Source: Trichoplax adhaerens
Lineage: Eukaryota; Animalia; Placozoa
Length of the DNA stretch: 64,000 bases
NCBI RefSeq assembly: GCF_000150275.1
Contig: NW_002060945.1
Span: 8,262,011 to 8,326,010 of the forward strand
Direction: 5' to 3'
Below the pieces are notes generated by a model. The model saw only the letters and a list, made by a program, of their open reading frames with translations. It had not been told where the DNA came from and did not search any database. The position numbers and the translations under genes are program-made. Below, in pieces: positions 1 to 28,747 of this stretch; the first letter of the stretch is position 1, and each line of letters opens with the position of its first letter.

Positions 1-1404
1 TGGATTAAAAGTAAATTTATACCGGGCGAAATTTCAAAGAAATGGTCAATTGACTCCTGCTATAATCCAAGTTCCTGTTGATAAATCCGCGCACTCAATG
101 CATGATTTTATCAGCGATTGCCAAATTATTAAGTAAGATATGATATTCGTTACTAAGAATAATGCAGCAAAATGAAAATTAAAATTTAATGATATTGTTT
201 GCTTACCTTGAAAAATTATTGATTGATAAACTACTGTGTAATTATAAATAATAACTTCTACCATTACGTTCTGATTGATAATTAAATTCATTATACTATT
301 TCTGATTATAAATAAATTAATCTTAAAATAAGATCACAAGAATCGCAATATTTCGCCAAATTTCTTGGTATTTACTATACTCCATCGCCCACAATAACGC
401 CTATTGGAATTTTTAAAAATTCAATTTTAACCCTTCAAGACTTAATCCTAAACGATCAAACGATTGTCAGTGACACAGATAAAGATTTGACTAGATTAAA
501 GAAGATTTATTTTATGGTTAATCAGATTATACAAGGTATCATGTATTTACATAAAAGTAAACTAATCCATGCCCATTTGACAGCTGGAAACATATTAGTA
601 AATTGTACTGCTAAACAATCTCACAACTATAAGTATAGTGCACTATGGATACTTCAGACATTAGCTTGTAAAGTAGTTCAAGAGTAACAACATACCAGTT
701 TTTCTAGATATCTACCTTAATAAATTAAAAATATCTAAATTTGGTCATGGTGCAGACAGTAATTTTTTTAGTGATTAAGATTGTCCAATGTCGACTTATA
801 TTAAGCGATCTATTATTTATTGTAATAGATTATTTTCCGAGAAGATCAACTCGAATTAAAACTGTGTCATGCAACGACAGAATCTACACTCTATCAATGC
901 AATAATTTCGAAAAATCAACAATTCACTATTATTTGGCTCCTGAAGTCTTAAAATGTAAGTGTATACATATATATATATATAATAGCTAATTAGCTAAAG
1001 TTATAGATATATAAAAGAATCGGTAACTTTATTTATACTATCCTAATTTCTGATATAGATCAAGTAATTTAATATGAGCAAATATTTTATCACAAACTTA
1101 GCCCATCGTATTTTATTCTATGCGATTAGATAATAGTTATGAAGAAGCTTTAGATATTTACAGCTTAGCCATCTTATTTTGGGAGATTTGGTATTGGAAA
1201 TTAATCGCTAATGCGTTCAACTGGAATATTGGTACTGATCACGATCAAAAGATAAAAGATTTATTTGCAACAAATGAACTTGTTCCTAAGCTTCATGAAG
1301 ATATGAGCAATATATGTGCCGATTCCCTAGCTATTGATCCAGAAAGGAGACCGGATATTAAATCTTGGCACCATAAGCTAGAGGAGGCGTTAAAGTCTCA
1401 TTGA
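1..1404 (+). CDS. 3' end (pseudokinase domain) of a dynamin-like GTPase-pseudokinase gene, paralogue of 20099-26052; 5' part lies outside the window
   Basis: GT-AG exons <1-132, 333-597, 829-955, 1130-1404 splice in frame: GLKVNLYRAKF..AIIQVP / ..QGIMYLHKSKLIHAHLTAGNIL / LKLCHAT..YLAPEVLK / ..DIYSLAILFWE..DPERRPDI. Collinear with 24.7-26.05 kb, with the same intron phases. An upstream GTPase domain is inferred from the paralogue. Confidence 0.88.
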
Positions 1405-4400
1405 TAAAATTTTTAGAGGTTTCTCTTATTAATGGGTGATAATTTTTAAATCAATAATGTCGATTAGTTAGATATACAATTATCCGTCGATAGAGCTTCG
1501 AGGAAATCTCAGAATAAGTACTCGTCAGTATATAGGTTTATTAATTGCAGTGACCAATAGTAATTTGAAGGTAAAGATAATACGATAATAATTATATAGA
1601 GCTGGAGACATTGCCAGATAAATGCATAGTAGAATACAATATACAAACGATTGAATATGCTTATAGCAAGGATTGGATAAGAAATACATGTTTATAAATT
1701 ATTGATGTAATGGTTATAATTAAAAATATAAAATATCGTCTATGTGTGTATTTATTCTTATCTAGAGTGAGATATTGTATTATAGAATTATTTCTTACAC
1801 AAGAAAATCGCCATTATTACTCAACGTAGAAATATCAGACATTTATCAGCAACTGCACACGATATTAAATCTGATTTCGTGAAACTGTGTTAATGTAAGC
1901 CTGCATAAGATGCTGTACAAACTGTCACAAGAAATAACATTAATATTCTGTTATTATTATAAGATTACCATTATTAATGTAGCAAAATCTTTTAATCCCT
2001 TATGTTACAAATAGCCTCAGTGATCGTGTTTAGTGTGATGTTTCGGAAGGTTTACGGTCCGTCATAATCGCAATTAAATTACCAGAGAAGTAGAATTTAT
2101 TGGAATTAGTTTACGAAAAAACCGTGTGAGATTATAGCGTATACAACGACGTGGCTAGTCGAATAGCTATAGCAATGTAGAATGGGTAAAGTGTGCAAGC
2201 TTACCGTGCAACTAGCAGAAATAGCTTACGAAATAGATGTAGAATTAGCGCTTTTATAATATAAGAAACACAGCTCGAGGAAATTATTCATAAAACATGA
2301 ATGACTATTGAGAATGGCTTAATTCTATATTAGGTTAGTTCGATGATACAATCAAGCTAGAGTATAAGAGATTTCCACAATATAAATAGTTAAATGTTGA
2401 TTATACAAATAAGGATTTTTGTTACAATCTATATGAAAATTAACTTTACTAAGAGTATAATATACCGTATTCAGAAGTATACACTACATTTAGATTTCAG
2501 GAATAATATGTTGATAGGAATAAATCGTGAATAAGACATGTTTGAAATTGATTTTTTGCAATTACATCCCATATCTTTACAACGTCGGATTTACTATTTA
2601 AGAAAACATACCTTAGAATTCATAGCGAAATTGGCTCATCATTGCCTAAGGTGGTACTGTATAAAAATGCAATAAGAGCAATGCATAGATATAACCTCAT
2701 TATCAAGTCATTTGTAACTTTCCAGTAATTATTTTCTTGTATCAATTCAAAGCAAAATATAAATCATAATTTTAAATTTAATTATGATTTTATTTACTAT
2801 GCTATGCAATAAGCACTTACATGATATCTAGTCTTAATAAAACAGTAATAAATATACATATGCAATATATGTACTTACTTCATCCCATAAATAATAAAGT
2901 AGAACTCGAATTGCCACTTACTTTCAGAATAATCAACTGTAGATTTTCTTCGCCGACTTTAAAATAGCCTAAGAAGTTTAAAAAACTTTTAGCCTCTAAA
3001 CTTCTAAATTCTATAGTTACCCCAGCAATGTCAACTAGTACTCGCATTCCTTTTAAAGTATTCCATGAAGTGATTAAAGCAGATTACAAATAAATAACAA
3101 TGAGAAATTGGAGAAGATGATCATGTTGTCCAAACTCCTATCTCAATTATCTAGATCTGTTGCAAAGAAAGAGTTTGTCTTTTCATGTCTGGAGGAGAAG
3201 AGGATGACAACCGAGGCCTTGATAAATAGAATTTCTTATTTCGATAAAAATTATCTTTTACGCCTCCCATCAATCCTTAATATATTCGTAAAGTTGTTTA
3301 TCAACAATTGCTGATCATTATCTTGTATTTCATTTTTATGCTATTTGTGATCGAATTAATGTATTTAGGAGGATATTAGAATTCATGAAAAGGCGGTTAC
3401 ATTTTTCGGATTTTCTTATAAATCTTTAAATATAATTCCTACTATTCTAGGTGATCTAGTCCCACGGTAGCCTTTTCATACAGTGCGAAGTAAGCCTTAT
3501 GAATGATTTGTTTATCAGCTAAATTTCTTGTTGAAATCAATACAAATTTGACTTATCATAATTTATACGAGATTATTTCCTACAATGTTATATTCAACGA
3601 ATAAAATATGCAAGTATCGGTAAAATGAAAGTTTCAATTAAAATTTTGCAGAATTATGCACGCAAGTCGAAATCATTTAAAGAATCACATACTATTATAA
3701 GGTTATAATATTGTGCACGCTTAATTGCAAACTGTAATATCATAAGTATATCCAGCATAAAATAATGTAGTTTTTGGAACAAAATAGAGGGATTCTACTA
3801 TGAAATAAAATTAAATTATTTCTTTATTGTTACAATCACTTGCAATACATTGTAACACAGTGCACGTATAATTCGCAGAAAATAACTAAAATCATCTAGT
3901 ACTTCAGGGTAAAATAATCCTCTGTATCACAAAGTAAATTAAAGACTTTAATTTAAGATACCGGTATTACAATTACTCCGAAAGCTGTAACTGTGGTATA
4001 AACGAATTGCGCTATTCTAAAAATTATTTTCGGAGCTATAATTTTATGGTACCCTTAAATTCTCAGAGCATAAAATTTCGTTAAAAGTGAAGTTGATACA
4101 TACAGTAGGTGTCAGTAAATTAATCAGGAAAATATTAGTGCAATAAAACATAATGGATTTCATTTACCGTAGAAATACTAATAAAACGTAATTCGCTTTA
4201 GCTATATAATACTGGTATAAAATCCGATCACGAAAATTCAGAACTTTATTAGATCTAATACAAAGGTTAGCTACACACGTCGCTACTCTAGCTGAATACA
4301 ACTACTGAAAGACTCCCAGAAAGAAAAATCAGATAATCTAATATCACTTACTTTTATACTCTCCATAATCTTCGCAGCTAAAATCAATATAGCAATATTT

Positions 4401-5402
4401 CACCTTATAAACATAAACAAATTATTATTAGTAATAACATTTTACAGCGGACCATCATTAATCCAATATAGAAACGATTACAGTAATTGCGTAGACATTA
4501 TTCCTACCACTCAAAGTACAATGATCTAATCATTTCCTAATCTATAATTTACCGTTCTATTTTTACCTCTGACTCTATTATTAGCTGTCACAAAACAACT
4601 TTCGTGATGGAACCTAAACTAGTCTATCTACTCTATTCAATCTCCCGACTAACTTCAGAATATACTCTATAAGGAGCTAATCAATTCCAGTATTAGAGAG
4701 CTGAGTCAATCGATAGGGTTTAGGTTAATCAAACTTTATTTATTACTAGCTATTAAAGCAAAGCACCAATGTACTCTACATCATCTTCAGTGGAACTGAA
4801 GATAAAACTAATTAACATTTCTTGTATAATTTTTCTAATCTTATACAAATGCACCGGTGCTAACCAGTATTAACATTAACAATATCATAGAAAGTCATGC
4901 ACAATTTATCAGAGGTTTAGTATAGACTAGACCAAGTGTTAATGTTGTTAAGTATCACTAATAAATATTAATTAGCAACTATGAATAATTATAACACCTT
5001 TACATCATATGTTCGCTATCGTTATTTACTATCATACTAATCAATATTATGAAGATATAGCTTAACTCAAGACGTAAATAATAATAATTATCTAACATTT
5101 AAGATTATTGTCTGCCAAAACTCGCGCTTAACAATTATTAATGATCAATATTTTTGATCACATAACTCTAATTGTAACTTAATTCTAAAACTAGAACGAG
5201 GAACTTAGCTCCGTAACAGTGGCTCAACACCCCCACTGTATACAGTCATCCGTACTCTAACATAGAATCTATCATTACAGTCTATAATTATATGCTACTA
5301 AATATACCATAAGATATATATATAGAAACGATACCACCATACATTATACTAAACATGGCTAATAATCTACAATCACAATACTAAGTTACTTTACAAATAC
5401 AT

Positions 5403-8400
5403 TTACATGTCGTGGTCATATTTTCTCAAGATAACATTAACGCCTTCTCTAAAATTTTCAATGATATCAATCTTATCTTGCGCTGTATCCTTTGCCTGAT
5501 AGCCATTTTTCTCACTAGTTTGGCTAATAAAAGTTTCATTGGCTTCTATTTGCTGATATATTTTCCTTCGTATATCCTCGACAAACGTCTTAATTGGATT
5601 AGCATATTTCTGTGCGATTTCGTCAGCTTTCTGTTTCTCAGCTAATTCTAAAAGTATTTTAGGCGCATTTTGTTGCAATATTGATAAAATTCTCTTTCTT
5701 TGTCTATTTCTTTTATTTCTAGACCACACTACACCAACTAGAACACCCAAAACAACAACAGAAATAATTGCTCCAATGCCACCTGTTACACCACCAATGA
5801 CTCCTCCAATAACGGCAGCAGCAACACCATCGGCTATAGTAAGGCCGATAGCAGCACCTGCAACACCACCGCCAACAGCTCCAGTGGTAATACCAAAAGT
5901 AGTATAAAAGTTTCGCCACGATTTTGTTACGTTAGGTGGCGTAACATCAAGCCTTAAACTAATTTCTCCAAGCGATGAAGTGATATTTAAATCGTATAAA
6001 CAATCGAAACTGTCATCATTTATTTGTAATAAATTTTCCAAATTCGCTAAGGCAAGAAAAACATCACCATAACGTGCATCTAAAGATATTTTGATATCAT
6101 CTTGAAATTGTCTAAGTAAGCCATGTTTCTTTTCCCAGAGCGTTAATAAGCGAATAAATCGATCACTGAATAATATACAGATAAGTTCTTTAATATCCTG
6201 GTCAGCAACTTTTTCCCGAATTGGAATATCCTCTAATATCCAGGTCGTCATACCGTTTCTAAAATCGTCGCAGTCCAGAAATATACGCAAAGAATTAGCG
6301 ATTTGTTTAGTTCTATCATCAATAGTCTTTACGATATCTCCATGAAAATCTGGATTTTTTAAAGTGCTCTTAATACTTATTGTATTATTCTTCAGACTCT
6401 TTAAGTAAGAGATCCGAACAGCATCATTTAAGTAAGAACATCTGGATATGAAGCGGTATCGATTGGCTATGACCCCCAATAAACTATAGAACCAACTATA
6501 CATATATGTGTACGATAGATAAAATAAAGCCATCGTTAATGCATAATCTAATACATCAATTTTAGATTTATTAATATACACATCTTTTAGAAAAGGCTTT
6601 TAAAATAAGTGGAGATAACCATAATTGAAACAAAAAATAGGCAGCGTAGATTAATGATTACTATTTACTTTGGCAAATAATTTAAAAATTATTGGGAAAC
6701 TTACCAGCTACTGTTTGTTATTATTTTCTTCAAACTGTCTTCTATGAGTTGAGCAATAATGCAATGTAACGATTTCCATTCGTCTGAAACAAACCCAGCT
6801 TTAAGGTGATTTATTACATTGGTACTGGACAACAATATTAGCTGAGACTCGCGAAAACCAGGCCAAAGTCGTTTTAACTTCTCCTTAATACAATTTTCAA
6901 CGTCATGTTGGTCTTCACGTGCAATGGTGTCCCATTTATTACAAACAAAAATTGCTGATTCCGGAGAAAATAGATGAAATTTTTCTGTATTGAGATTTTG
7001 CGCTTCTGTTATAAGTCTTATAAGCTGTGAAATAATGAAAGATTGAATATTAGATACACTTTTTTATAGCTAATCAGTATAAATCAAATACGGTTATCAA
7101 TGCTTACTCGATCCTCCTTCATACCCCCAGCGTTGCTGACATCGATTACATAAATAATCGAGCATGCATTTGGTAAATATTTCATGACTTGTTCAGTTGC
7201 TAAAGAAGTTTCACCAATTCCAGGGCTATCTACTAGTAATATGCCATCCTAATGGATTTATAAAAAATCCAATTTAATAATCTCCATGTCGTGATGCACC
7301 CCATATTTGATTTTAAAAATAGCTATATTTGATAAAGCTAAATTACTAAGAATAGGTACTATCGTGAAGCTAATATTAGATGATTGATAAATACTATAAT
7401 GATAGCTAATATTAGCTAGTTAACTAATTATGGTATAAGATATATGTGACTAGAAATATTGTAATTTCGAAGATGCCCAACATCGAAAGGTGCTGAAGGT
7501 TAATAGAAGAGTAGTGATATCTTAAGTAGAATAATTTAGATTGTAGAAGATAATGATGTTCAATTTGACAGAAAATGTTTTGTTTGACGACTCATGTCTT
7601 ATTTTAAATTAATCAATTTGTCATAAAAGGATTTAGCGAAATATATTTAAGAACTGCAGAGATGAGCTCAGTGAGAGAGAAGAGACTTCACTTTGTTTTG
7701 AGTTCGGAAGACTTTAGATTTTAGACTAGATTCTTCTAGTAATCAATCATTGCTCTACTATTCCTAAAACTTTGTAAAAGCCTTTAGAAACACCATTGAC
7801 TAAAACTGCTATTGTGAGACACTTTTACTACACCCCACTAATACTAGATGAAACATCAGTTATATACAGTGTTATAAATTTTACTAACGTCGAATAATAA
7901 TTAATTAGCTAGTTCCATACAATGCGAGTTCAACGATCTCTCAACTCACTAGAATCAGAAAGTCTTATTCTACTCTATCATATTGGACGAACCTTCAGAA
8001 ACGGGAAATCCCATTGAATAGTCAGTTTTCCGCTTGCTAATTCTAAATCATCAGCGTCATCGCAAGCGATATCCACATCGTCTGCAGAGATTGAGGCTAA
8101 TAGCATTGGTGTTTCTTCATAAGTCTTATTATCTCTGTTCGATTGAAAAGAACCTCCACTTTTTGCCCCTCTGTTAGTAGATGTTGACGCTTTCGACATC
8201 GATTTCATGGCGTTTTCAATTGTTGCAGCCATATCGGAAATATTATCAATGTTTATTTCTTTACCAGATTTTAACTTCTTATCATTCGCATTCCAAGTAA
8301 AGAGATTAATGCAACGATTTGTAGAATAGCGTAACTTGCTTACGCATGTTGTGGTATGTAAATGGCCAACAGGTAACAATGATTCGCCTAAGATCAAATT

Positions 8401-9150
8401 AATCAGGGTACTTTTTCCTGCACTTACTTCTCCTATAATTATAACCAGATAAAATAGTCACTATCATCTTGTCGTTTACATTATATTTTTAATCAGAAGT
8501 TTAGTAAATATACATTATGTTACCGCATGCAATATAAACACGAAATCAGTAGATATTAATACCAAAGACCAATGTTTGAAAGCAGAAAAGATTACTATTC
8601 GAACGAACCTGCGATTAAAATCGGACATTCTACGCTACGCAAACGGCTAATGTACTTATTCATATTTTCTAAATATTGTTCATCATAAATTTCGACAATG
8701 TCAACCAATTCTGGCTCTAATCCTTGAAAGATTGATTTGTTCACTCCTTCTAATAAACTAATTAATTCCTTTTTATTTTCCGCAAATTTTCTGAAGGCGT
8801 TTTCAATCCTTTGAGCTGACTGCAGTTATTAAAAAAGCAAGTTGATAGTAGGTAACGTATGTATCATACACTAATCAGAATAGCCTATTAGTTACAGTAC
8901 ATCGATAATTTTATTCAATTGCATAGACTAGAACGGTTAAAATAGAACTGACCAAAAAATTGACAGCACTTACGCAGGAGCGATTATAATTTTCAATTGT
9001 TTCGTTTCTTCGAAATAAATGTAATCGTTCTTTAAAATTTTCGATTGTTTTTAATCCACTAGCGTCAATTTTACACCTTTCGCAGAGATTCATGGCAGTT
9101 TTGAAGCTTTGTATTTCGTCGATTTCATTTTCTTTTGGGATATAATCCAT
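5403..9150 (-). CDS. Dynamin-like (mitofusin/BDLP-type) GTPase with C-terminal glycine-zipper transmembrane hairpin, 793 aa, 6 coding exons
   Basis: Exons 9150-8974, 8819-8609, 8432-7993, 7248-7108, 7024-6705, 6495-5403 (2382 nt, open). G1 GEVSAGKS, G2 HTTT, G3 DSPG, G4 NKWD. Hydrophobic GITTGAVGGGVAGAAIGLTIADGVAAAVIGGVIGGVTGGIGAIISVVVLGVLVGVVW is followed by basic SRNKRNRQRKR. Confidence 0.9.
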
Positions 9151-12100: not shown

Positions 12101-12260
12101 GAGTATCTTTAACTTAGTGGATGACTTGTAAAACAAGTCATATACGTACAAATACAGAAAATTAATTCATAGTATAATGGAAGAATTCAATAAAATGATA
12201 TTACTTCATAGATACTGTTGCTTCGTATGGGATAATAAAATAAAATAAAATACCTGCAGT

Positions 12261-15200
12261 TTATATACCACAATCATAACTTTTCAGGACATTATTAATT
12301 CCATTCCTGAGCTTACTAATAAGCTCAATCTTATCCATGGCAGCACTCCGCATTGTTGAGTAATCTATTTGATTAGCTTCGTTAAGGAGAACTTCGTTTG
12401 CTTTTAGCTGTTTTATAACCTGCATTCGCGTATGCTTAATAGATTCTTTAATTGGATTAGTGTAGGCCTTGGCAATCTCTTTAGCTCGATCACCAGTGGC
12501 TAATTCTGAAACTACATTGGGTACACTTTGCTGTATAGCAATCAAAATTTTCCTTCTTTGTCTAGAAATTCCAGTTTTCGACCACATATAACGAGCTAAA
12601 ACTGCTATAACAACTATAGAAATGACAATACCTATGCCACCTGTTACGCCACCAATTACTCCACCAATGACGGCAGCACCAACACCTTCAGCTATAGTAA
12701 GCCCGATAGCAGCGCCGGCAGCGCTACCGCCAATAGTTCCAGTAACAATACCAACACCAGCATAAAAATTCCGCCATGATTTACTTGTTTTAGGTGATGA
12801 ATTGACGTGTAAGTCTCGTAGATCATTAAGATCAGCATCAGCTATTTGCAGCGCATTTTCTAAGCCCTCCAATACTTTTAGAATACGGCTATAATGCAAG
12901 TTTACTGATTCTCGTATTTTATTATAAAATCGCCTGAGTAACCCATTGTCTTCTTCCCAAAACGTTAATAAGCTAATAAATCGATCATCAAATAAGTTAG
13001 TAATGACCTCTTCGATATCAGTGACTTTTTCCCGAATTGGAATATCATCTAAATGCCACTTTGTCATACCAACTTCAAATCTATTACTTTTTAGAAACTG
13101 AAGCAAAGAAACAGTAATTTCTGCAGTACCATTATCGATGATTTTTTCGATATTATCATGAAAATTTTGGTCTCCTATGGTAGACCTAGCTAATGCGATG
13201 TTATTTCTTAGATTGCTTAAGTAAGAGCTCCGAATATCACCTTCTAAGAAGGAGCAATTAGTCAGCAAGCGGTATCGATTAGCAACAATACCTAATAATG
13301 TATGGAGCCAACTGTTTTACGAAAGAAAACATTGAAGGAAGATGGGTTAAATGTAGTATATTATAATAATTTTAGACGTATTTATAATCTGAGTCATATA
13401 GACAATCGACTATCTTACAAAACGAGCTTTTGCATATCTTACAAATAAGATATTGCAACGGGAGCCATAATGTTAGTTTAGGTAAAAAAAGCGGATTGAT
13501 AATATAATTAACATAGTAACCTATGAATTAATAGCTAAATTTTTTTAATTGTAAACTTACCTGGTATAATCCACAACTTTCTTCTTCAAGCTTTCTTCTA
13601 TTAAATGAGCGATAAGAGAATGAAGTACTCGTAAATCATCCGATACGAATCCGGCTTTAAAATGATTAGCAGCATTTGTACTCGACAATAATATTAATTG
13701 AGAATCATGAAAGCCAGGCCAAATTCGTCTTAACTTTTGTTTAATAGAATTTTCAACAGTATCTCTGTCTGTCTTTGGAATACTATCCCATTTATTACAT
13801 ATAAAAATAGCTGATTCCGGAGTAAATGTCTTAAATTTTTCTCTTTCCATGTTTTGCTCTTCTATTAAAAGTCTAACAAGCTGTAAGTTATGAAAGACAT
13901 TATTACTGGATAAATAAGTTCATTAATCAATTGTAAGTAAAATTCGATCATTAAAGCTTACTCGATCTTCTTGTATGCCGCCAGCATTTTCAGCATTGAT
14001 GACATAAATAATTGAAGACACCTTTGGTAAATAACATACAATTTGTTCAGTGGCCAACGCTGTTTCACCAATTCCTGGGCTATCAACTAAGAAGACACCA
14101 TCCTAACGATTCAGATACAGAAAGAGTCTTACATTAATAATTCTTTATGATACCATTAAAAAACGTTTAGCTTCTACCCCATTTAAATACTTGACGACAG
14201 TAACAGATCATTAATAGTATTTAATACATTGTATTTGTTTGTTTGAGGTTAAAAAACGAACAAAGTTTACTAATTTAAGATGCTTTATCAGACCTTAGGA
14301 CGAGTAGCTCACAAGGCAACAATAAAAGATATCCAGGTTCATATACGTTTTAACACACTGCGATACAATTATATGCGTTAAATCCGTTAAATACTAGTTT
14401 GTTATCTATATCATAAACCTAATAATGAAAAAGCAGGATTATGATCATACAGTAGGCACATTTGCTACTAAAATGCTATATTTGTACGTATTTGTATCTG
14501 TGCTGATATAGAAGCATACGGCGTAGCACACGAATATCTCAAATGCTTTCAAAATAAGAGAAAAATATGATAACATAACCGAATGTATTACCAACATAAT
14601 CCTAAATTATATATCGTCTCAAACGGATTATGATCCTTATCCAGAATTTCTCTATACCAAACCAACCTTTAGAAAATCAAACTCCCAGCAAATTTCAAGC
14701 TTCCCGTTTGATAGTTTCAAATCTTCAAAATTATTACATTCGACATGCACATCATCAATTGAGGTAGATAGTAAGGCCAATTCCTCATCATTCGTACTAT
14801 TTCCATCTAGCCCAGCAAAACCTTGACTGCTTCTTAAGCTGTCCTTGGAGTCTTTTTTTTTCGATGTCAAATGCATAACCTTTTGAATCTCAGTCATCAA
14901 ATCGGAAGTACCATTGATAGGAGTTTCTTCATGAGGCTCTAACTTTTTTTCACTTGCATTCCAAATAAAGGATTTTAAGCAGGGATTTGTAGAATAGCGT
15001 AATTCACATATACATGTAGTTGTATGTAAGTGACCGACAGGTAACACAGATTGACCTAAAATTAAATTGATCAGGCTACTCTTTCCAGCGCTGACCTCGC
15101 CTAAAATGTGTTTAGATGAACAATTAATTTTATAAACATCTTGTAAATGTATGTATTGTAACTTATATCGTGTACATAAACCATTTAAAGTTATTTGAAT

Positions 15201-15885
15201 TTCAATAGTGGATAAATAGTACGCATAGAATATTTGTCAAACCTGCGACTAAGATCGGGCATTCCATACAATGTAACTGCTTAATATGCTTATTCATATT
15301 ATCTAGATATTGTTCGTCGAAAGTTTTAACTATTTCCACAAGCTCTGGTTCCAACTCCAGGAAAATAAACTGACTTGCTCTTTGTAATAAGTCGATGATT
15401 TGAATTCTTGTTTCCTTAAATTTATCGATAGCACTTTTGATCCTTTGCGATGACTACAATAGTTAAAAGAAAATTGAGATGGAACTCTTGAGGCTTTATC
15501 TACGCATGAAACATTATGGTTACGTTGAGATAAGTTTGGTGTATGATTAATTAAATAAATTAAGTAGTATTTCAAACATAATACCACTACATGTAATTCA
15601 CAACGGACGATCGCGCCACCGGAAGCATCAAAAACTGTTATCGAATTTTATTGAGCTAAATTGAAAGGTTTAAAATTGTCATTTTCACCAAAAATTTGCA
15701 ATATTTACCGCAGAGCGTTGATAATTTTCGATGGTTTCATTCCTTCGAAGTAAATCTAGCCGTTCTTTAAAATCTTGCACAGTTTTTAACCCTTTGGTAC
15801 TGATACCATACTTTTTACATACATTTCTTCCAGCTTTTAAGCTTTGTATTTCATCGACCTCATTTTGAGTTATTATGTATCCCAT
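12261..15885 (-). CDS. Tandem paralogue: dynamin-like GTPase with glycine-zipper transmembrane hairpin, 777 aa, 6 coding exons
   Basis: Exons 15885-15709, 15453-15243, 15100-14667, 14102-13962, 13880-13561, 13311-12261 (2334 nt, open). GEVSAGKS, HTTT, DSPG and NKWD are present. Exon sizes 177/211/141/320 are identical to the 5403-9150 gene. Confidence 0.9.
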
Positions 15886-18429
15886 CCTGGACCAATAAAC
15901 CTAATAACAGCTGACTTTATTCCAAGTCAAAATACCGTTTAATTCTGTCACTCGATTACTCCTTCATTGAAAATATAAAGATAAAAAGGATGATTTAATT
16001 GTCAACTTTAGGTGTCTTTAACGAATGAGGGGAAATGAATGCATGCAAGTTTGATAAATAAAAAGCGTATCATGACTATTATTTTAAATAAGGTTCAGCG
16101 TCTAAACGTTAGAATTGGTAAGAGTTTGCGGCACATACAGACAGCGTGTGTATTGCATACAGTTTTTCAACTATTAGAATAAAGGAGCAACCTTCAAACT
16201 TATTTTTTGCTGCTGCAGCTACGATGTGGTGCTAAAATAAAGTTTACAGCATATCAGATTAACTTTAAACATAAAATTAAATTTCAAGTTATCCTTGAAT
16301 GACTATTCAATGAATACCTCGATATACGCAAGTCATCAATGGTATAATTTTCACTCAAATCACGATGAATTGGGAGCAATAGTATCCACTGCATACAAAA
16401 ATTAATTGCGAGTATTTCAGTTAATATAGTCGTATTTTGACTGATAGACTGATCGAGCATTGATAGCTACTTCGTTAATAAGATGTTTTATTTTATACTT
16501 TGTTACTTCAATTTTTCTTCAAATCTGGCAAATAAGCTCGATGTGATGTCAAGCAGTAATGCTTGTATCTAGAAACCTTTCGAGACTGAGATTTATTCGG
16601 CAAATTCAATGCACTCCTACCCTTACGTGTGCAATCACGTTTATTGCTTGGCAGTAGTGTAAACAATAATATATAAATTATGATTTACTTTTCGAAAGTA
16701 TTTATTCTACGGTTTAGTATTATCCTAGAAATACGTATATTACAACGTTTCTAAATGCCCATGAACAACAACAGAAGGCGGAAGTTGAAAGTCATTTTAA
16801 ATAAAATAGATTTAAAGGGTAGCATTTGACTGTAGCACGGGCATCGCAATCAAACTCGTACTATCTGTACATCAATTTCATGATATTCTTGCCAAACATT
16901 GAAATATTAAAGTATTTCACCAGACCAACTTCTGCGTAATACGTCATCGATCATTTTAACAGCTTAGAGTAATATCAAATCGAAAGTAATACAGTACTAT
17001 ATCTCTCTAAAGACTGTCAATATATCATGTTTAGTTCACGATCAAATCACAATTAATGCAATCTTTAAAATTGATAAAGTTCCTCGGCTGCAACCTATGT
17101 GATATATTGTAGTAGTAAGTTCATGTCATGTCGGTTAAAATTGCTGCTATAAGGATTCATACAGTATTACGATGATCATTATTTATTAGTTATAGAGAGC
17201 GTTTTGTTGTCGGTAGTATCGATGGTGATTGCTGGTGATGTAGACTAAATTACTCTTAGAGTGTAGTAATAAATCCCTATCCAGAGATGCATTTTACCGT
17301 ACTACGATGCCGTATCGCTTTTATTCCATTTCCATCTCTGTACAAGCTCGAGTAGACAATAATTTGGGAAAATAAAATTGTAGTCTCATTTTTTAGGGCG
17401 TGACTAATTGCAATAGAAAAAATATTCTTCTATCAGATATACAGTATAATGAGCGATAAAACATTTTACAAATTAATGTTCCCCTTCTTAAGGAAAAAAG
17501 AAAGCATGATTAAACTTGATGGAGCAATAGCCTTTGACATAGTCGTATCTGAATCGTTATTCTATAAATAATTTAATTAAAAGTGGTCAAATTAATCGCA
17601 CATCAGCAAGGACTACAAGGTGATGCATTGATTGTATTATAATTTATTCTTCGAAATTTCTGTCCGCTTAACATTAGCGTGTTATTATGGCAAAGGTCGA
17701 CCAAACAAAATATTTCAAAATTGAATGCTGAACACGTCTAATTCTTAATCGATTGTAAGGCTACGTAGTGACCAAACAATTTTTAGTTACGCCTATCATG
17801 TCTGTAGAATAAAGGCTGGCCCTATCTGCTCGGTTTCAAACAGCTACTAACTTTAGCAGATTGGAGTTGTAATTTTAGAATCATCGCCACTCCATTTTCT
17901 AGATTAGAGTACGCGTATAAGTTAGTACTGATAAGTGTTATCGTAGTTTAAGGAGGAGGTTAACGATGCATTTGAAATCCGCTTAAGATAAAAGTAATCT
18001 GCTTACAGGAAATTTACGGTCGACCATTTCAACAGTACAGCATGATGAAATCGTTATGATGTAAAAACTCTAAATTGGAGTGTCAAGTTTATTATGCTTT
18101 CATGGTAACTATCTCTACTATACAGTACTTCAATATTTATTTGTATAATTAAAGATAAGATTATTGAATGCCTTGTTTATTACCAACAAAATACCCTACT
18201 ACACTTATTTCGATATTCATTAGCCGTTCAATTTCATGGAATCATGACTATTTATAAGAATTGCAGTAGAAACTTTAACGTATACGTAGTTGTATTGCAA
18301 TCAGGCTTGACTCTATTTACTCCGCATTCAATAGTTCATTATACAGTTATTAAATTACGCACCTGCTCTATTTCTACCGAAACGATGAAGACGTTCAATC
18401 AATCAGACTACATTACAAATATATCCATT

Positions 18430-19260
18430 TCAAGGCTACTAGCAAGCAATGCTGCAGAATCTTTCAAAATTAGCAACCAATCAACCGCATCAAGTTATCA
18501 CGACGGATTGATTCTATCTTCATGATGAGATAGTTGGACATGTTTTAACATAGAAGGATGACAGATCCAATCGATTGGATTTAGAAAAAGTAACGACTGC
18601 AGTTGAGAATAATTAGTCCAGGGTATCATCAATGCATTACTTAACAATATTTAAGTTGTTATAATGAATCAATTGTACCCCTAATGATGAGATAGTTAGG
18701 CATGTTTTAACATGACAGTTCAAATGGATTGAATTTGGAAAAAGCAACGACCGCAATGAAGAGTAATTATCCCAGGCTATCATTCATGCTTCATTCCTAG
18801 AACAGTATTCATGCTGTCATACTGGGCCAATGGATCGATTCTACCCTGATGATGAGATGTTGGACATGCTTTTAACATTGCAAGAGAAGAGAGTCTCAAC
18901 GGATTGAATTTGAAAATACAACGACTACAGTAGAGAACAATCATTCCAGACTATCATTAATACATCATTCAACAGTAATGAAGTTGTCATGATTGATTGA
19001 TTCTACCCGGATATTGAGCTCGTAAAAGACGTTTGAACGAACATAAAAGGATAATAGTCAAAATGGGTTAAAAATAGGAAAAAGGAACAACTGTAATAAA
19101 GAGTAATGATTCAGGGTTATCATTAGTGCATCCTTCAGCAGTCTTCAAGTGGTCATGATTGATCGATTATACCCTACGGATGAGATCATTCAATTTGTTC
19201 GCTTGATGATAGAAGGATGTAAGTTCAAATGGTTGAATTTGAAAAAAAGTAACAGACTGC
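18430..19260. repeat. Degenerate tandem repeat, about 5 units of 161-166 bp
   Basis: The anchor GATTCTACCC..GATGAGAT recurs at 18510, 18671, 18837, 18999 and 19165. Each is followed by TTCAAATGG(A/T)TTGAATTT(G)GAAAAA-like blocks and, in units 1-4, CCAGG(C/G)TATCATT-like blocks. Confidence 0.85.
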
Positions 19261-19569
19261 CATGGCGAATTCCTCCTTCATGGCCAGTTAATATCCATTC
19301 AACGATACACTACTGTATATCAACTCAACCATGATAGACTGTGGCAAAATGGCAAAGTCATAACTTACGGTTATTTTATAGAGGTCTGCTAGTATGATGA
19401 TAAAAAGTTGGAGAAGATCTTGAATAATGATGGTTCTATACAATTGGGGCATCAATTAAAATAGACGGCCTACAAATTTTCACGAATTTCGATGATGAAA
19501 AGTGATGTTGAAATAAACAATCCAGCGCTTGCAACGATGGAATATCGGCAAACCATTTTACAAGTTACG

Positions 19570-19830
19570 TCATACTGTGAGACCGGTCAACATCGTCGAT
19601 GTGTTCAAACCCCCTGGTCCAGTGTCCAACTGTCCAGTGCCCAGGATACAGTACACAGTTCGGTACAGTACTGTACACTGTACACTGTACTGTACACGAC
19701 GGCCATCTTCTCCGGCGACATGGACTTCAGTAGCAAAATCAGGTCTTTTTGCGCATGAGTAGTCCAGAGTAGCGATATACAGTACTGTCATGGTACCGTA
19801 CAGTATCGGACAGACCGATACATGATCCTT
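19570..19830. promoter_or_regulatory. GC-richer patch with palindromic ACAGTACTGT motifs; candidate promoter of the GTPase-pseudokinase gene
   Basis: Perfect palindrome GTACAGTACTGTAC at 19663-19676, repeated ACTGTAC/ACAGTAC, YY1-like GCCATCTT at 19702 and TGCGCAT at 19750. Lies about 300-500 bp upstream of the inferred ATG at 20099. Confidence 0.35.
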
Positions 19831-20098
19831 CTAGGGTCTGGGTGAGCATTTGGTGAACAAGAAAGGATAAACGCCAGCGGAGATTGCTGCCAGTTCCCAA
19901 TATAAACTGCCAGAATCCACTTCAAATACAAACTCTCGAGAGAGAAATCGATCGATATCGATTTTAGCCTAGTTAAACTAATCTCTACTATTGTAATTGA
20001 AGTCTTTTCAACGCCAATGGATTCTTCTGCTTCCTTTCCGTTTAAGCCATCATCATCCATTCAATGAGGAAACAACCTGGTCAACATTGATCACCATA

Positions 20099-23000
20099 AT
20101 GAATAACACAGGTAAAAACTTGCATGGACTCGTCTACCTACTAAATTTAGTCAGGTATTTGTCAGAGAAAGGGAATCTCTCTTACAAGCCCTTCCTCTAG
20201 TCATGTTACTCTATTTATAGTCTAACGCATTATCAATACAATGGCTGATAAACTATATTTTACCCAATGAGAATATTGCTATCATTCCTAATTTAAAACC
20301 CTAATATTCATTACAATGACAAAGAATTCTGGCTGATCATAATTCAATCTTAGCTGAACTGGAAGTAGTTACTAAAACTGCTAAATTGAGCCTGTTATCT
20401 AGATGTATATATACTGAACATATCAAATAGGAGGCTACTTCATTTCAGAATAACCTTTAAAATTAGGCTATAAATGAGAGAGAGAATCCTAACTTGTCCC
20501 AATTCAATCTCAGTTGGAGCAATCGTAGCCAAACTCGAAACGGTTACGAAAGTCAATAAAGTTTTTACGATAGTATGCTGATAATGTGATATTATATTTG
20601 TACGCCTTCCTCACGGCTCGCTCTAGATTCGCTCTAAATGCCTATACTAGGCATATCAAAATAGAGAAAGCTGCTTCATTTTAGAATAATTTCTAAAATT
20701 CGATTATAGATCAGAAACAATTCTAATATATCCTAATTGAATTTTAGTTGAATCACTTTTAGCTGAAATTGAAGCAGTTACTGAAGTCGATGAAGTTTTC
20801 GATATTGCCGATCGATTGGAATTAGATGTTGATGGAGATGATTTCTCATCATTAAAGATTCAAGTTAAGCAGCATTTACTCCAACTGCTGTCCGATACAG
20901 ATCAAACTACGTATCTAGAAGTAAGTAATAACTACAACTAACTTCATAAGTACTTTCAGCTAAATACAAATAGCTAGATATGAGCTAATATTGTAATTGT
21001 ATGCCTTTACTTCTATTATCTTATCTCCGGAAAAATATCTTTACCCATGATCGACGTAATGATACTAACGTTATTAAGATCAACTACTTATTCTTAAAAC
21101 TGTCATAGATTGCAGCCTTTATGGTAGCATTAGCAAATAATAACAATTATCATTTGCTGATGCTAAATCTAAATAATATTGTCATAAATACCTGGCTATT
21201 ACTTACAGTACGGTAATCTCGTTGAACTTCTTCTCAATTTTTTCGATATAAATAAAAGCATCGTACACCATCAGATGCAAATTAACCTAATCAATTTTAA
21301 CATTCTCTTCACAGTCTACAGTACATTACAAGTAATATTACCAGCTATTCAATGATAGCAAATCACGTAAAATATACACGTATATACGGTATACTATACA
21401 TTAACTATGGTCGCTTATGTTGTTGTTGTACTGTAGTATCTACTCATCATCAACCAGCCTCGTTTCATTCAAAGTGTAACACCACAAAGATTGCATTGAT
21501 ATTGCTACATCGTCTTGACTTGAAGTAATCTTTACTTATACAATTAATTTTCTGTAGGAGGTTAAGAAGGTAAATGCTGTAAGTGTTGATGACAATGAAG
21601 CTAGAAACACATTATCAAAACTTTACGCAAGTATTAAAGCCCTAGCGGAGAAGTTTGATAAATCGTTTGCCGGTGGAAGCAACTATCCTTGTAAGGAATA
21701 CGTGGAAGATATGCAAAGTGATTATTCCTTACTATTGGAAGAATTTAAATATCCAATTCTTGTTACGGGTAAACGATTACAATTATTTCTAAATTAGTAA
21801 TATTGCACCCTTGTATGCCGTTGAAATGTGAATTTATGGTGAACTTTAACCATGAGTATCTCGGTTTCGATTATAAGTTTTAGTGTACGTATGTTTAGTT
21901 AAATTCAAAATTGATTGCTATGCTAATAGGTCTTGCATTAAATATTAGGTGAAACTAGCGCTGGGAAGTCTTCCTTACTAAACTATCTACTTGGCGTTGA
22001 TTTATTATCGGTTCACACACTAAGTTGTACTAATAGAATATGTGAAATAACGTACGGAGAAGAGCCAAAAATTAAATTGGTAAATGCCTACGATGGCAAA
22101 GTGTTCTATACTGAAAGTTGGACCGCAGACAATAAGGACATTGCTATAAAAGAAATTCAGTCTCTAATATCTGAAAGGGAAACTCTGCAAGGCTCTAATA
22201 GTAATCATGAAATGAAGTCAAGTGAAGACGCACCTTATTCACTAGTTAGAATATATTGGCCATCTGAATTTCTTGAGGTACTATGGCAATTGTTGTAGTT
22301 TTTAATGACGTATATCGCATTAGTAGTATTATGTATCATTTTTTATTTATTATGCGTTTACCTATATAGAAAGATAAATAAATTTTCTTACTCTCTTTAA
22401 TTACAATCTTATGAATCATTTACAAAGTTGTAAAAACTTTTCGCAACGAATACCATCGTAATAAGATTTAGATCAAAATGCACATTTTATAAATACACTA
22501 GGATATGTATACTATACAGTGTATGTCGCTATGTCAAGAATATTCACAAGTGCACCATCGGCGTAGGCCGAGACTATAAAAGTCGAGCACTAGCTTAGCT
22601 GCTCAGTTCCATTTAGTCACTTGCAGGATCACTTGACTATTATTGCTAAGAATATTCTTACCTTTTTCTTTAGTACATTTTACGACTAAGATTAACGTAA
22701 ATAAAATGAAGTATTTAAACCTATTACTCATTAGTAGCTTATTTGTGTAGCTGAGAGTTAGTTCAACTACGATAGGTCCTTAAGTTAGTTGGAAACACAA
22801 GTACTAGTGAAGATAGTATTTAAGACCCGTTTTCTAGTTACAAAGGAGATTTGTAACAAATAGCAACTTGAATATTTATATAGTAATTGATATACTTATT
22901 TACTATAGTTTACCAGACTGTATTGGAACAACCATGATTCATAATCGTGTAGAGTGATCTAAATAATTTGTAAAACATATTTATTTCCTCAGAGTGGCAT

Positions 23001-26000
23001 ACTGGTCGTTGACAGTCCAGGAATTGGTGAGAAGAAAGAAGTACCGCACGCCTTGAGAAGCTACATTTTTAGAGCTGTTGCGTACATCATTGTCGTCAAT
23101 TCTGCCAATGCTGGAGGAATTCAGGCAGCTAGGGTAAAGTGCTTAATTATACGTTAATGTAGGAGATTGCGATTTATAAATATCTTTTATTTAATTTTGT
23201 TAGCTTCAAAAATTACTACAACAAATATCAGGTGTGCTAAGAAATGATGGGTATTTAAATTTTAATCCTTCTATGGCACTATTTATATGTAATAAATGGG
23301 ATACTGTAGCCGTACCGGAAAGAGAGCTTGTAAAAACTGATAGTATCACCAAGTTGAAGCGGTGCTGGCCAGGTATGATCCAAACCCAAATAATATTTCT
23401 ATCCATCAAAGAATTGTTGATGGCTAGAGCCGCCAATAATAATGCATTGGTACCACCCGAAGTTGTGCAACTATTCGAAATGCTTCGTGATTTGATTCCT
23501 ATTAGTCGAAAACAGAAATTATCGAAATCCTACAGGTGAACGTGATTAAACTATTAGCTTAGAAATGGTTATTCAATCTAAATTTCAAATATTAAATTTA
23601 AAATACTATCTGATTAGAGTTCTGTCTTGGATTAAATAAATCGTATTTAATATTTACTGTTCATTTTTAAGCTTTATGGCTGCTTTCGTTGAAGGTGTAC
23701 AAGAAACATGTCGATGTTATCTTCTGAGGGCAAAATCAATGGAGAGCGAACTAAAGGAAGATAAATCAAGATTAAAACTATTGGAAACAACAACGCAAAA
23801 GTGTATGAAAGAATTAGTTACGGAAAAAAATGCATTAATAAACGCTCTCATTGCAAAGTATCGGAAATTTGTTGAAAGTCTGAATAATGAATCCATAGTA
23901 AGTTGGTCGGAAAATGACCTTTTAGATGAAGAATTTGATGAAGATAATTTAATGAAATTACAAGAACATGCCGTTCTTAAAGTTAGGCAACGCTTAAATA
24001 ATCATTTAGAACTTGTTGCACAAGAGATACATGAAGATCTTCAGATAGCAAAAGACTTATTGTTAGAAAAATTTACCACGAGACTTGATGAAATTTTTGA
24101 TCAGACTCAGTCAAAATTAGTTGAATCAGCTGATATCGAAAATGATACACAAACGAATGACTTCTACTTAGATCCAAGAACTGGGTATTCGAAATTCTCA
24201 GAATTATACGGATTATACGATGTATGGACTAATATGACCGCGGCAAGGAGGGCTGCATTTATCCTTACAAGTCCTGTATGGGTGGCCCCAGCATTCATAG
24301 CTAGCCCTATCTACTATATTACAAAGTTGGTGAAAACCCGAAATCAACAAGAAGAGATTCAGAAATTTAAACAAAACAAACCTGAAGAAATGAAAGCTAT
24401 CACGCTTCTAATTCTTGACCATATCGGTTCAGAAAACTTTGCAAGAAAATTTGTTGTTGAGAAATTTGATTCATTAGCAACTTCTCTACTAAACAGTGTT
24501 AAAAGTACAATACTAAAATCTTTGCAAAGTAGAATTGATACCATTAAAACGGCTTTAAAGGATAAACGATGCCCTAAAGAAATCAACAAGCTTTATAAAC
24601 CGCTCAAAGAAGATGCTCGAAAACTATTAATAAATTTAAACAACTTTTACTTACAAGAATTAAGTGAATCATCGATTAAATTCAAAGATCTACAGGGATT
24701 CAATGAAGAATCTACCCCACTGTCATTAGGATTAAAAGTAAAATTATATCGGGCAACGCTGCACAAAAATGATGAAGAAAAGAACGTTATTATACAAGTC
24801 CCTGTTGACAAATCTATGCGTGATATGCATGAATTTGTCAGTAATTGCCAGATTATCAGGTAACCTTTTAATTAATGCATAAAATAATAAGCTAATTACT
24901 TTTCATTGTACAGTGGTTAAAGTAGCTTATAATTGATTCCTACAGTTATGTCAATTGATACTTTATCTCTTACATGGCGAATAATATCGTTACTATCTGA
25001 TCTTTTAATCACCTTATTAGTACTCTGGAATCGCAAAATGTCTTGAAATTTTTAAGTATCTGCTATACTCCACCACCAACAATAACGGCAATTGGAATTT
25101 TCGAAAATTGTAATTCAACCCTTCGAGACTTGATCTTATACAATGAAACAATTGTTAGTGAAAGCGACTCAGATACTATTCGTTTCAGAAAGATTTATTC
25201 CATGGTTAATCAAATTATACAAGGCATCGTATATTTACATGCGAAAGAATTGATTCATGCCCACTTAACGACTGAAAATGTATTGGTATGTTATATAGCT
25301 TGTTTTATATTAATAAAATTTAGTAGCCATTAATGTCTCAAAGCTGTTCGCCAAAAAGCAGTTAAAGAAATACTGCACTATATTTATCGATTTGAACCTA
25401 GTAATTATACTCGAGAGGTAATAGTCATTAAAGTATTAAACATTATATAGTGATGGCATTTAATGATCAGTTTTATTGATGATAGGTTTCGTTAGACAAA
25501 GATCAGCACAAATTAAAGCTGTGCCATGCAACGAAACAATGCACACTCTACGAAGACATTGATTTTGAAGAGTCAATAATCCCCTATTTGGCCCCTGAAG
25601 TTTTAAAAAGTAGATATATTTCTTTTTTTATTTATTAATACAATATCTAAGATAAATAGGCATGTGGAAATATCGAAAGCCTTAGCTACGATAACCTGGT
25701 TTATGATGCAAACCTTATCTTTTAGCAAATAGTATATCATCTCTAGCTTACTACGTGTTATTAAATCATTCTAGGCTATTATTATAAAGAGGCTTCAGAT
25801 GTCTACAGCTTTGCAATATTGTTTTGGGAAGTTTGGTACTGGAAATTGGTGACTAATTTGTTTGACTGGAATACTAATACCTGCCATAGTCAAAAAATAA
25901 GCGATCTGTTCAAAATGCATAAACTTACTCCTAAACCTCATAGAAATGTAGACGGAATATGTTTAGATTCCTTGGCTATTAATCCCAATGAAAGACCAGA

Positions 26001-26052
26001 TATTATTTCTTGGCATGATATTTTAGAAGATATTACGAAGAATCTTCAATAA
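20099..26052 (+). CDS. Dynamin-like GTPase fused to a C-terminal pseudokinase (DSTYK-like domain order), about 1017 aa
   Basis: Exons 20099-20111 (tentative start MNNT), 20748-20920, 21558-21768, 21949-22277, 22993-23133, 23204-23535, 23672-24859, 25021-25285, 25486-25609, 25775-26052 splice in frame. G1 GETSAGKS, G3 DSPG, G4 NKWD, hydrophobic AAFILTSPVWVAPAFIASPIYYI. Kinase fold: YLHAKELIHAHLTTENVL, LKLCHAT, YLAPE, SDVYSFAILFWE, ERP. Confidence 0.88.
20340..20800 (+). repeat. Local tandem duplication (about 235 bp) of the intron end and start of the exon at 20748
   Basis: About 20415-20565 aligns with about 20650-20800, including an AG acceptor at 20512-13 followed by GAIVAKLETVTKVNKVF versus ESLLAEIEAVTEVDEVF. 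A third partial copy (SILAELEVVTK) lies near 20345. Confidence 0.7.
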
Positions 26053-27990: not shown

Positions 27991-28038
27991 TCATGGACTA
28001 CTAAAATATTCCCTAGGGAACATTTTAGTAGTCTATGA
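27991..28038. repeat. 48-bp near-perfect palindrome
   Basis: TCATGGACTACTAAAATATTCCCTAGGGAACATTTTAGTAGTCTATGA is self-complementary apart from 2 mismatched pairs. Confidence 0.85.
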
Positions 28039-28747
28039 AGTATTACAGCATGACTGCCCATTGTACATTACAGTAGCACTGTACATGCACAGAAGATGCG
28101 TCGAAACGATGTACACTGTAGTATATCGAACTAGAGTTTATACCGATTTTTTCAGATACGTCATTGACAAGTTCTAATTTTATTAATTGAAAGTATTATT
28201 AAAATTCACTAAATATGCTAGAAATGACGATTAAAATGTATTTATGCACTATACTACAATTAAGGAATAAACTATCTATCTCTTGACATTTAATTGAACA
28301 TCTAACATCGATAAAAACAATAACTTCATAATCGAATCCTTTGCTATTTACGGTTCTTAAATTACTATGCGCTATGTCATGATAATGAAATTAGATAGTG
28401 CATCACTTTTTATTTAAAGTAAATGCAGTCGAAGGGCATATATTGTTACTTGACTTTCTCTGTTGCATTGCGAATACAGTATGGCAATACCGTAATAATC
28501 AGTATCAGTTTACCTTTGTAGCAAACCGTAGCAAGTTTAAGCTCACATGAAAACAGTGCATGAAAGGTAAAATATTACTATGTACTGAAAAATACACAAA
28601 CACACACAATCGTACTTTTGACTTTTCATTATATATTAATAAAAGTAAAAAGTGTAAGTAAGGTACGCAAGTATTACGAGTGAAGGATGGTAAAAAAAGT
28701 AATGATAACTGTACGAGTGTACTGAATTATGTTATAGATAAATTACT

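Follow-up and report, generated by a model that had tools for sequence, protein, structure and literature searches.

We analysed a 64,000-nucleotide stretch of the Trichoplax adhaerens genome (C1412:8,262,011-8,326,010; hereafter the window), which lies within a 9.66-Mb scaffold and holds the downstream end of a ~85-kb array of dynamin-like GTPase genes. The array comprises two classes, glycine-zipper GTPase genes (Z) and GTPase-pseudokinase genes (PK). Judged by sequence and predicted fold, both classes are GTPases of the bacterial dynamin-like protein (BDLP)/mitofusin type, and they appear to belong to a second animal BDLP-type lineage, distinct from mitofusin and widespread in non-vertebrate animals. 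In our estimate there is about an even chance that the array, made up of copied head-to-head pairs of such genes, encodes Z and PK proteins that assemble with each other on membranes in a stress- or defence-related role.

Genes were called from six-frame open reading frames (ORFs) combined with tblastn, tblastx between paralogues and GT-AG splice sites. Database models served as full-length queries, the window DNA was searched exon by exon, and the genome searched was the 105.6-Mb assembly of 1,414 contigs. The gene order and strands given in an earlier note on this DNA were reproduced by these methods: the 3' part of a PK gene (g1, +), two Z genes (g2 and g3, both -) and a second PK gene (g4, +), with g3 and g4 arranged head-to-head. 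That note had also placed the source in an early-branching animal, and it is indeed placozoan. The region is AT-rich (~30% GC), and near-identical copies of the genes are found on a 210-kb contig of Trichoplax sp. H2.

Of g1 (PK-c; 1..1404, +), the window contains the last part of the stalk exon along with the exons encoding the pseudokinase, identified by tblastn and Pfam. The gene starts ~3,993 nucleotides (nt) upstream of the window and is represented by the database models P0027 and P0038. With P0027 as tblastn query, residues 318-822 extend to window position 133, residues 821-907 align at 328-606 and residues 880-1016 at 808-1401, and Pfam kinase matches lie on the ORFs 487-687 and 1120-1404. 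g1 is a paralogue of g4.

The two Z genes share a six-exon structure. g2 (Z-e, TRIADDRAFT_54952; 5403..9150, -) encodes 793 residues in exons of 177, 211, 440, 141, 320 and 1090 nt (9150-8974, 8819-8609, 8432-7993, 7248-7108, 7024-6705 and 6495-5406), which were placed by splice sites and by the H2 orthologue P0020, with 98-100% identity in each aligned exon segment. Exon 3 (7993..8432, -) carries the P-loop (GEVSAGKS), the switch region and a variable Ser-rich/acidic insert. A glycine-zipper hydrophobic hairpin at 5712..5918 (-), delineated by hydropathy and by a cluster of invariant alignment columns, is the sole transmembrane-grade segment of the g2 protein. g3 (Z-f, TRIADDRAFT_54953; 12261..15885, -) encodes 777 residues (exons 15885-15709, 15453-15243, 15100-14667, 14102-13962, 13880-13561 and 13311-12264) and differs from g2 in the lengths of its third (434 nt) and last (1048 nt) exons only. 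It is 100% identical to the H2 protein P0019 over the segments compared, its exon 6 shows 48% identity to that of g2, and its glycine-zipper hairpin lies at 12573..12776 (-).

The PK gene g4 (PK-d, TRIADDRAFT_54954; 20741..26052, +) encodes ~1004-1017 residues, comprising a BDLP-like GTPase, a stalk, a short paddle and a C-terminal pseudokinase. Nine exons were placed (~20747-20920, 21558-21768 (211 nt), 21949-22277, 22993-23133 (141 nt), 23204-23535, 23672-24859, 25021-25285, 25486-25609 and 25775-26052), in agreement with TRIADDRAFT_54954 and with the corresponding H2 protein; the initial four codons of that annotation could not be placed in the window sequence. Exon 3 (21949..22277, +) contains the P-loop (GETSAGKS), and its intron matches that of the Z genes in position and phase. 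The paddle, a short Pro-containing hydrophobic segment, occupies the position of the Z zipper (24234..24335, +) and is followed by the pseudokinase domain (24720..26052, +), in which VIIQ, HAH and HAT replace VAIK, HRD and DFG, with APE and the C-lobe kept.

The five introns of the shared region are located at identical protein positions and in identical phases (0, 1, 0, 0, 2) in Z and PK, and the second of them (phase 1) interrupts the Gly codon immediately before the P-loop in both classes. The earlier note had drawn attention to common intron phases and to exons of 211 and 141 nt, and the match extends to all five introns. Because these introns agree in position and phase, its proposal that the two classes descend from one ancestor and differ in the C-terminal part stands as well.

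By adding 70 kb upstream to the window, we obtained the whole array, which holds four PK genes and six Z genes (one without a zipper and one degenerate), plus fragments. Its order is Z-a(-), PK-a(+), a Z exon-1 fragment, PK-b(+), a PK 3' fragment, a Z fragment, Z-b(-, zipper lost), Z-c(-), a PK exon-1 fragment, Z-d(-, degenerate), PK-c(+), Z-e(-), Z-f(-) and PK-d(+). Without exception, all Z pieces lie on the minus strand and all PK pieces on the plus strand. Five head-to-head Z/PK junctions are present, two of which are recognisable by remnants only. In a tree computed from the shared exons, each aligned separately before concatenation, a single deep division parts Z from PK, and duplications of similar depth follow within each class. 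The spacers between Z-a and PK-a and between the Z fragment and PK-b share a 319-bp block of 66% identity, and PK-a and PK-b are sisters. Given the shared spacer block, the sister PK genes, the single deep split and the strand rule, the array has evidently grown by repeated copying of one ancient head-to-head pair. The ratio of nonsynonymous to synonymous divergence (dN/dS) between paralogues is ~0.4-0.5 with dS near 1, i.e. near saturation, and pseudogenes and fragments are present.

Three of the copies upstream of the window show peculiarities. In Z-b (L005:1165-2091; window coordinates ~-25679 to -24810), the last exon is open over 309 residues, with nearly the whole glycine zipper gone, and the gene either encodes a soluble variant or is decaying. 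The annotated model of PK-b (TRIADDRAFT_54946, P0087) has no hydrophobic paddle of the kind seen in the other three PK genes, a lack that may be genuine or a gene-model artefact. In PK-a (TRIADDRAFT_54945, P0047), the variable insert of the G domain has grown to ~190 residues rich in Ser, Asp, Glu and Gln. This loop, expanded in PK-a, is short and varies among all the other copies, which marks it as a hypervariable surface.

The identity of both classes as BDLP/mitofusin-type GTPases, which the earlier note had proposed, is borne out by profile scores and by fold. A G domain, defined by G1 (GxxxxGK(S/T)), G3 (DxxG), G4 ((N/T)KxD) and a Pfam Dynamin_N score above the cut-off, is found in both. 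Dynamin_N scores 76-84 bits in the two classes (76 bits in g2) against a cut-off of 27, and no Z or PK copy has lost any of the motifs GE(V/T)SAGKS, DSPG and NKWD. G1, G3 and G4 are conserved in nearly all of the 30 family members compared, every Z and PK copy included. The G domain of both classes is therefore predicted from its intact motifs to be catalytically competent. AlphaFold models built on the 30-sequence family alignment were of moderate quality (predicted local distance difference test, pLDDT, 73.6 and 74.5; below 50 at residues 219-262 of g2, within the variable insert). In both models the G domain is set in the helical neck and trunk bundles of the BDLP fold. Foldseek returned the Nostoc BDLP structures 2j69 and 2j68 as full-length top matches for both models (2j69: E-value 1e-15 for g2 and 9e-15 for g4), followed by IniA, SynDLP, MFN1/2, Fzo1 and Campylobacter DLP1/DLP2, and sequence searches of solved structures ranked the relatives as the structure search did.

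The two classes differ in their membrane segments. Z proteins contain a single hydrophobic stretch of ~52 residues, rich in Gly, Ala, Val and Ile and with overlapping GxxxGxxxG motifs, so that (G/A/S)xxxGxxxG repeats lie within the hydrophobic segment, as expected of a glycine zipper; Z-b is the copy in which it is lost. In the same alignment columns, PK proteins carry ~19-20 residues of moderate hydrophobicity, including Pro. Given this difference, the simplest reading is that Z is anchored by its hairpin and that PK binds peripherally. The zipper/paddle region is modelled at low confidence, and its placement as a membrane element at the trunk tip was read from sequence alone.

The zipper core GGVIGGVTGGIG shows next to no variation among the four intact paralogues aligned, one of which reads GGVIGGATAGIG, and recurs unchanged in P0002, a 362-residue protein fragment. 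Identity between Z paralogues is 0.42-0.72 in the zipper, compared with 0.40-0.53 in the preceding helical part and 0.35-0.51 in the following part. Between g3 and P0002, the zipper is ~80% identical (read off the alignment) versus 58% for the whole exon. The zipper does not stand out by dN/dS, since dS is lower there too, and composition or gene conversion may lie behind part of its conservation. The LeoA/LeoBC profiles match g2 residues 636-757, which span the zipper region, and Gly-rich membrane segments are present in ordinary bacterial dynamin-like proteins (DLPs) too; for these reasons the zipper may simply be an anchor. A protein atlas search with the zipper half of the protein returned unnamed bacterial leads only.

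The kinase domain of PK is clearly recognisable as a fold, with the PK model matching JAK-type kinase domains at a template modelling (TM) score of ~0.7. It is generically TK/TKL-like (tyrosine kinase/tyrosine kinase-like), with JAK and FGFR as best matches. In all four array copies, VAIK, HRD and DFG are replaced by VIIQ, by HAH (HGH in one copy) and by HAT, HAI or HLM, respectively. None of the three catalytic residues (Lys, Asp, Asp) is kept, in line with the earlier designation of these domains as pseudokinases, and APE and the C-lobe are retained. As the glycine-rich loop is lost in the Trichoplax kinase domains as well, nucleotide binding by the pseudokinase is unlikely.

The PK architecture is not confined to placozoans. 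Profile searches recovered proteins of 990-1080 residues (E-values 0 to 1e-170) from Cnidaria, Bivalvia, Cephalochordata and Hemichordata, namely from scleractinian corals, many bivalves, three Branchiostoma species and Ptychodera. Their similarity to PK is full-length and collinear, running from the N-terminal motif through the BDLP body and the paddle to a C-terminal TKL-like kinase; a kinase-less or truncated model of the family was found in the octocoral Dendronephthya. These proteins are annotated as uncharacterised or hypothetical, or named 'Mitofusin-2' or 'spe-8', names that were probably assigned automatically. Many non-placozoan members keep VAxK, HRDLKLxN and DxG, with intact kinase motifs in Oculina, Stylophora, Mytilus, Mizuhopecten, Ruditapes and some Branchiostoma copies; others are degenerate, sometimes within one species. 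Two further protein fragments from Logan assemblies, P0005 and P0008 (407 and 457 residues), have a trunk motif (W..E.P ... WE) in common with the Z profile (E-value ~1e-5 to 1e-4) and end in a kinase N-lobe-like segment, so that the family probably extends to further taxa.

Z, on the other hand, has a narrow range. Searched against 1.84 billion representative proteins, the profile of the Z C-terminal exon gave two strong matches, the Trichoplax cluster and P0002. We interpret Z as a kinase-less branch of the PK family, so far recorded only in placozoans. When the family tree is rooted on bacterial DLPs, the animal members form a clade and Z falls inside it. Z and Trichoplax PK are each monophyletic, with long stems, within an unresolved animal clade, and a clade joining the two is not rejected (approximately unbiased test, p = 0.36). 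Z groups weakly (86/79) with a long-branch Sinanodonta row, a grouping that we discounted. The tree does not separate loss of the kinase in Z from a kinase-less ancestral form. After the animal family, the next profile matches are bacterial DynA-type and other DLPs, ahead of mitofusins, and the nearest relatives outside animals are BDLP, DynA and LeoA/LeoBC. The PADLOC LeoA and LeoBC profiles match the stalk, zipper and C-terminal helix of both classes with E-values of 3e-11 to 8e-8, which are weak matches in a compositionally biased region.

A profile search of the Trichoplax genome also revealed more divergent family members at C1411:210-233 kb and at ~143500-144400, which single-sequence searches had missed. 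Their motif states are mixed: one combines an intact P-loop and DTPG with a dead kinase, one has HRDLKLDN with EIG in place of DFG, and one has HPD and DPS.

In BDLP, mitofusins, DynA and DLP1/DLP2, GTP-dependent dimerisation through the G domain is established, as is a lipid-dependent switch of the stalk between closed and open forms, and neighbouring paralogues often pair heterotypically (PMC6104087, PMC6162298). In bacteria, DLP genes commonly come in pairs whose products act heterotypically (PMC6104087). By analogy, we propose a mechanism in which the zipper hairpin would anchor Z permanently in the membrane with both ends cytosolic, as in mitofusin, and the paddle would bind PK to the membrane reversibly, as in BDLP, making PK a recruitable GTPase. 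The anchored Z would recruit or co-assemble with soluble PK as a heterotypic pair, and the two could remodel or tether membranes by GTP-dependent dimerisation of their G domains, like BDLP, mitofusins and DynA. The dead kinase would act non-catalytically, as a regulatory, scaffold, docking or switch domain. Finally, the fast-evolving birth-and-death array would serve stress- or defence-related membrane maintenance and not housekeeping. Heterotypic Z-PK assembly is plausible and, in our view, the likeliest mode. The case for a role in defence or membrane repair is circumstantial, drawing on birth-and-death evolution, on the patchy range of the family in lineages with large innate-immune repertoires and on the phage-defence roles of the bacterial counterparts: LeoA/LeoBC (Eleos, formerly 'Dynamins') and DynA are described as protecting against phage. 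In placozoans, innate immunity and wound healing are mediated by fiber cells (PMC8639732).

The two classes might instead be neighbours by history only, i.e. two old subfamilies kept local by tandem duplication, each forming homo-oligomers on its own membrane or in its own pathway, with no functional pairing. We take this explanation seriously, even if it seems to us rather doubtful, and several of the points for it also weigh against our main reading. All repeated adjacency of Z and PK traces to a single ancestral arrangement, and it therefore counts once and provides no independent evidence of coupling. The Z/PK split is as deep as splits between phyla (path length ~3), and profile methods no longer connect the stalks: when the profile of Z exon 6 was compared with that of PK exon 6, no significant similarity emerged, and the stalks are alike only in fold and in the short trunk motif. 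The PK family occurs in other animals without a Z partner, which means that PK can function without Z, and the members on C1411 have no Z neighbours either. Within the array, Z genes also adjoin one another (g2/g3 and Z-b/Z-c). Against our main reading it also counts that the Z/PK spacers, at 2-4.9 kb and with little conserved sequence, are too long and too poorly conserved for compact bidirectional promoters, and that no immune-type domain among TIR, Death, CARD and NACHT is fused to either class. History alone, however, accounts less easily for the head-to-head orientation and the perfect rule of strand and class, which have outlasted many duplications, losses and two partial deletions, or for the fact that paired heterotypic DLPs are the rule in bacteria and mitofusins. 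An alignment-free complex prediction with the G domains of Z-f (P0019 residues 100-400) and PK-c (P0027 residues 135-440) scored 0.00 and counts neither way, and the within-class branching orders were too poorly supported for a congruence test of co-duplication.

A sensor/executor module for cell death, in which the pseudokinase protein, serving as decoy or switch, detects a cue from a pathogen or from damage and triggers a zipper pore, by analogy with RIPK3-MLKL or paired plant NLRs, appears improbable to us. GxxxGxxxG zippers are known in pore- and channel-forming proteins, the Z exon is best conserved in its zipper, and active-looking and dead kinases are mixed within single species, all of which would suit such a module. 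A pore-forming role of the zipper nevertheless finds no specific support: the lower dS in this region means that composition or gene conversion may account for part of its conservation, membrane-binding bacterial DLPs carry similar Gly-rich segments and the LeoA/LeoBC profiles match the zipper region, and Z-b is zipper-less yet retains an open frame. Furthermore, the Trichoplax copies inspected, in the array and on C1411, include no fully canonical active kinase to act upstream. We give almost no credence to the notion that the zipper genes are ordinary mitofusin orthologues, or that the cluster reflects bacterial contamination or recent transfer, although an oyster member of the family is automatically named 'Mitofusin-2' in UniProt, the best solved relatives include MFN1, MFN2 and Fzo1, and the nearest non-animal relatives are bacterial. 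The Fzo_mitofusin domain (PF04799) was found by Pfam at C1409:2.758 Mb, which marks the genuine mitofusin locus, and is absent from Z, and Z has no strong relatives outside placozoans. This disposes of a possibility raised in the earlier note, that the zipper genes are ordinary mitofusin orthologues, and the reading was rejected on these grounds. Contamination is also contradicted by five or more spliceosomal GT-AG introns, by a GC content like that of the surroundings and by the position of the genes inside a 9.66-Mb scaffold, conserved in Trichoplax sp. H2.

Beyond heterotypic assembly itself, a broader proposal can be formulated: animals outside vertebrates and ecdysozoans would have kept a second BDLP-type lineage fused to a kinase switch, and the placozoan Z and PK would be a two-gene system whose products assemble together where membranes are damaged or invaded, a eukaryotic parallel to the paired dynamins (Eleos/DynA) with which bacteria defend themselves. 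Taken as a whole, we consider this unlikely; if true, it would add a new arm of cell-autonomous immunity or membrane repair. To our knowledge, mitofusin is usually regarded as the sole BDLP-type dynamin in animals, and the literature searched contained no description of these loci or of a dynamin-kinase fusion architecture. A BDLP body with an attached kinase or pseudokinase is unusual and constitutes a new architectural variant within the BDLP/mitofusin branch. The placozoan pair offers a compact, tractable system for heterotypic dynamin pairing and a possible animal counterpart of the bacterial defence role. Should the functions prove to be ordinary organellar ones, the result would still correct the annotation and the picture of dynamin-superfamily evolution.

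The g3/g4 head-to-head intergenic region (15886..20740) holds a tandem array, a dispersed repeat and exon-1-like pseudo-copies. The degenerate tandem array (~18505-19253) consists of four to five units of ~154-174 nt (~160), with a period that is no consistent multiple of 3, and Rfam gave no match anywhere in the window, the tandem array included. An element of ~35-55 nt at ~19630-19700 recurs in more than 40 places on many scaffolds and both strands, sometimes in local tandem sets (C1401:616000-617219), and is probably a small dispersed or minisatellite repeat. Upstream of the first coding exon of g4, two pseudo-copies at ~20318-20580, spaced by 160 nt, resemble the start of PK exon 1 (motif of the ILAxLExVT type); they may be left over from exon duplication or serve as alternative first exons. 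Elsewhere in the window, two class-C G-protein-coupled receptor paralogues lie on the minus strand (28000-34000 and 55000-60000), with 7tm_3 matches on the ORFs 30637-30921, 57339-57644 and 55969-56391 (E-values 5e-22, 1e-18 and 9e-21) and a weak ANF_receptor match at 31906-32232 in the minus-strand receptor region. Assembly gaps (runs of N) are located at ~30300-30350 and ~49870-50110, and the ORFs listed across them are artefacts.

Among known systems, MLKL (with RIPK3) couples a pseudokinase to a membrane-acting module in one chain, and ROCO proteins such as LRRK2 combine GTPase and kinase in one polypeptide. The Trichoplax proteins contain neither a four-helix-bundle/HeLo domain nor Roc-COR, which makes the likeness to both one of analogy. 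Mitofusins and Fzo1 belong to the BDLP-like branch as well: they have a hairpin anchor between two helical regions, with both ends on the same side of the membrane, and match by sequence with E-values of 5e-7 to 4e-3. Mitofusins also act as paralogue pairs (Mfn1/Mfn2); Z and PK are likewise two paralogue classes, for which pairing is proposed. Unlike them, Z does not contain the Fzo_mitofusin domain, and the array family is lineage-restricted, tandemly expanded and fast-evolving.

The bacterial paired DLPs (Campylobacter DLP1/DLP2, 5OWV; Eleos LeoA/LeoBC; B. subtilis DynA) resemble the array in that distinct DLP paralogues lie side by side, and Z and PK, as two distinct adjacent DLP genes, also show LeoA/LeoBC profile similarity, if only through weak matches. 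The bacterial genes form co-directional operons and their proteins have no kinase domain, whereas the Trichoplax genes are divergent with spacers of 2-5 kb. Cury et al. (2022) screened eukaryotes for Eleos-like pairs and listed the matches; the examined part of their Table S1 has no DefenseFinder Eleos call for Trichoplax.

The animal Dynamin_N-kinase proteins (Crassostrea gigas LOC105335524, Oculina LOC144663376, and those of Mytilus, Branchiostoma and Ptychodera) are of the same family as PK, with which they share the N-terminal motif, G domain, stalk, Pro-containing paddle and a TKL-like kinase with the C-lobe signature WE-x-WY. Many of them look kinase-active (VAxK, HRDLKLxN, DxG), in contrast to the dead Trichoplax copies, and a search with the Z C-terminal profile found no Z-type partner outside placozoans. 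Finally, the closest solved relative of both classes is the Nostoc punctiforme BDLP (2J68/2J69). It differs in sequence (identity ~14-17%), in that Z has the 52-residue zipper hairpin in place of its paddle, in the C-terminal kinase fold added in PK and in the introns of the animal genes. It is nonetheless the best structural match of both classes over nearly the full length (TM-scores of 0.56 and 0.49 on the target) and their best sequence match among solved structures, with the G domain, neck, trunk and membrane paddle in common.

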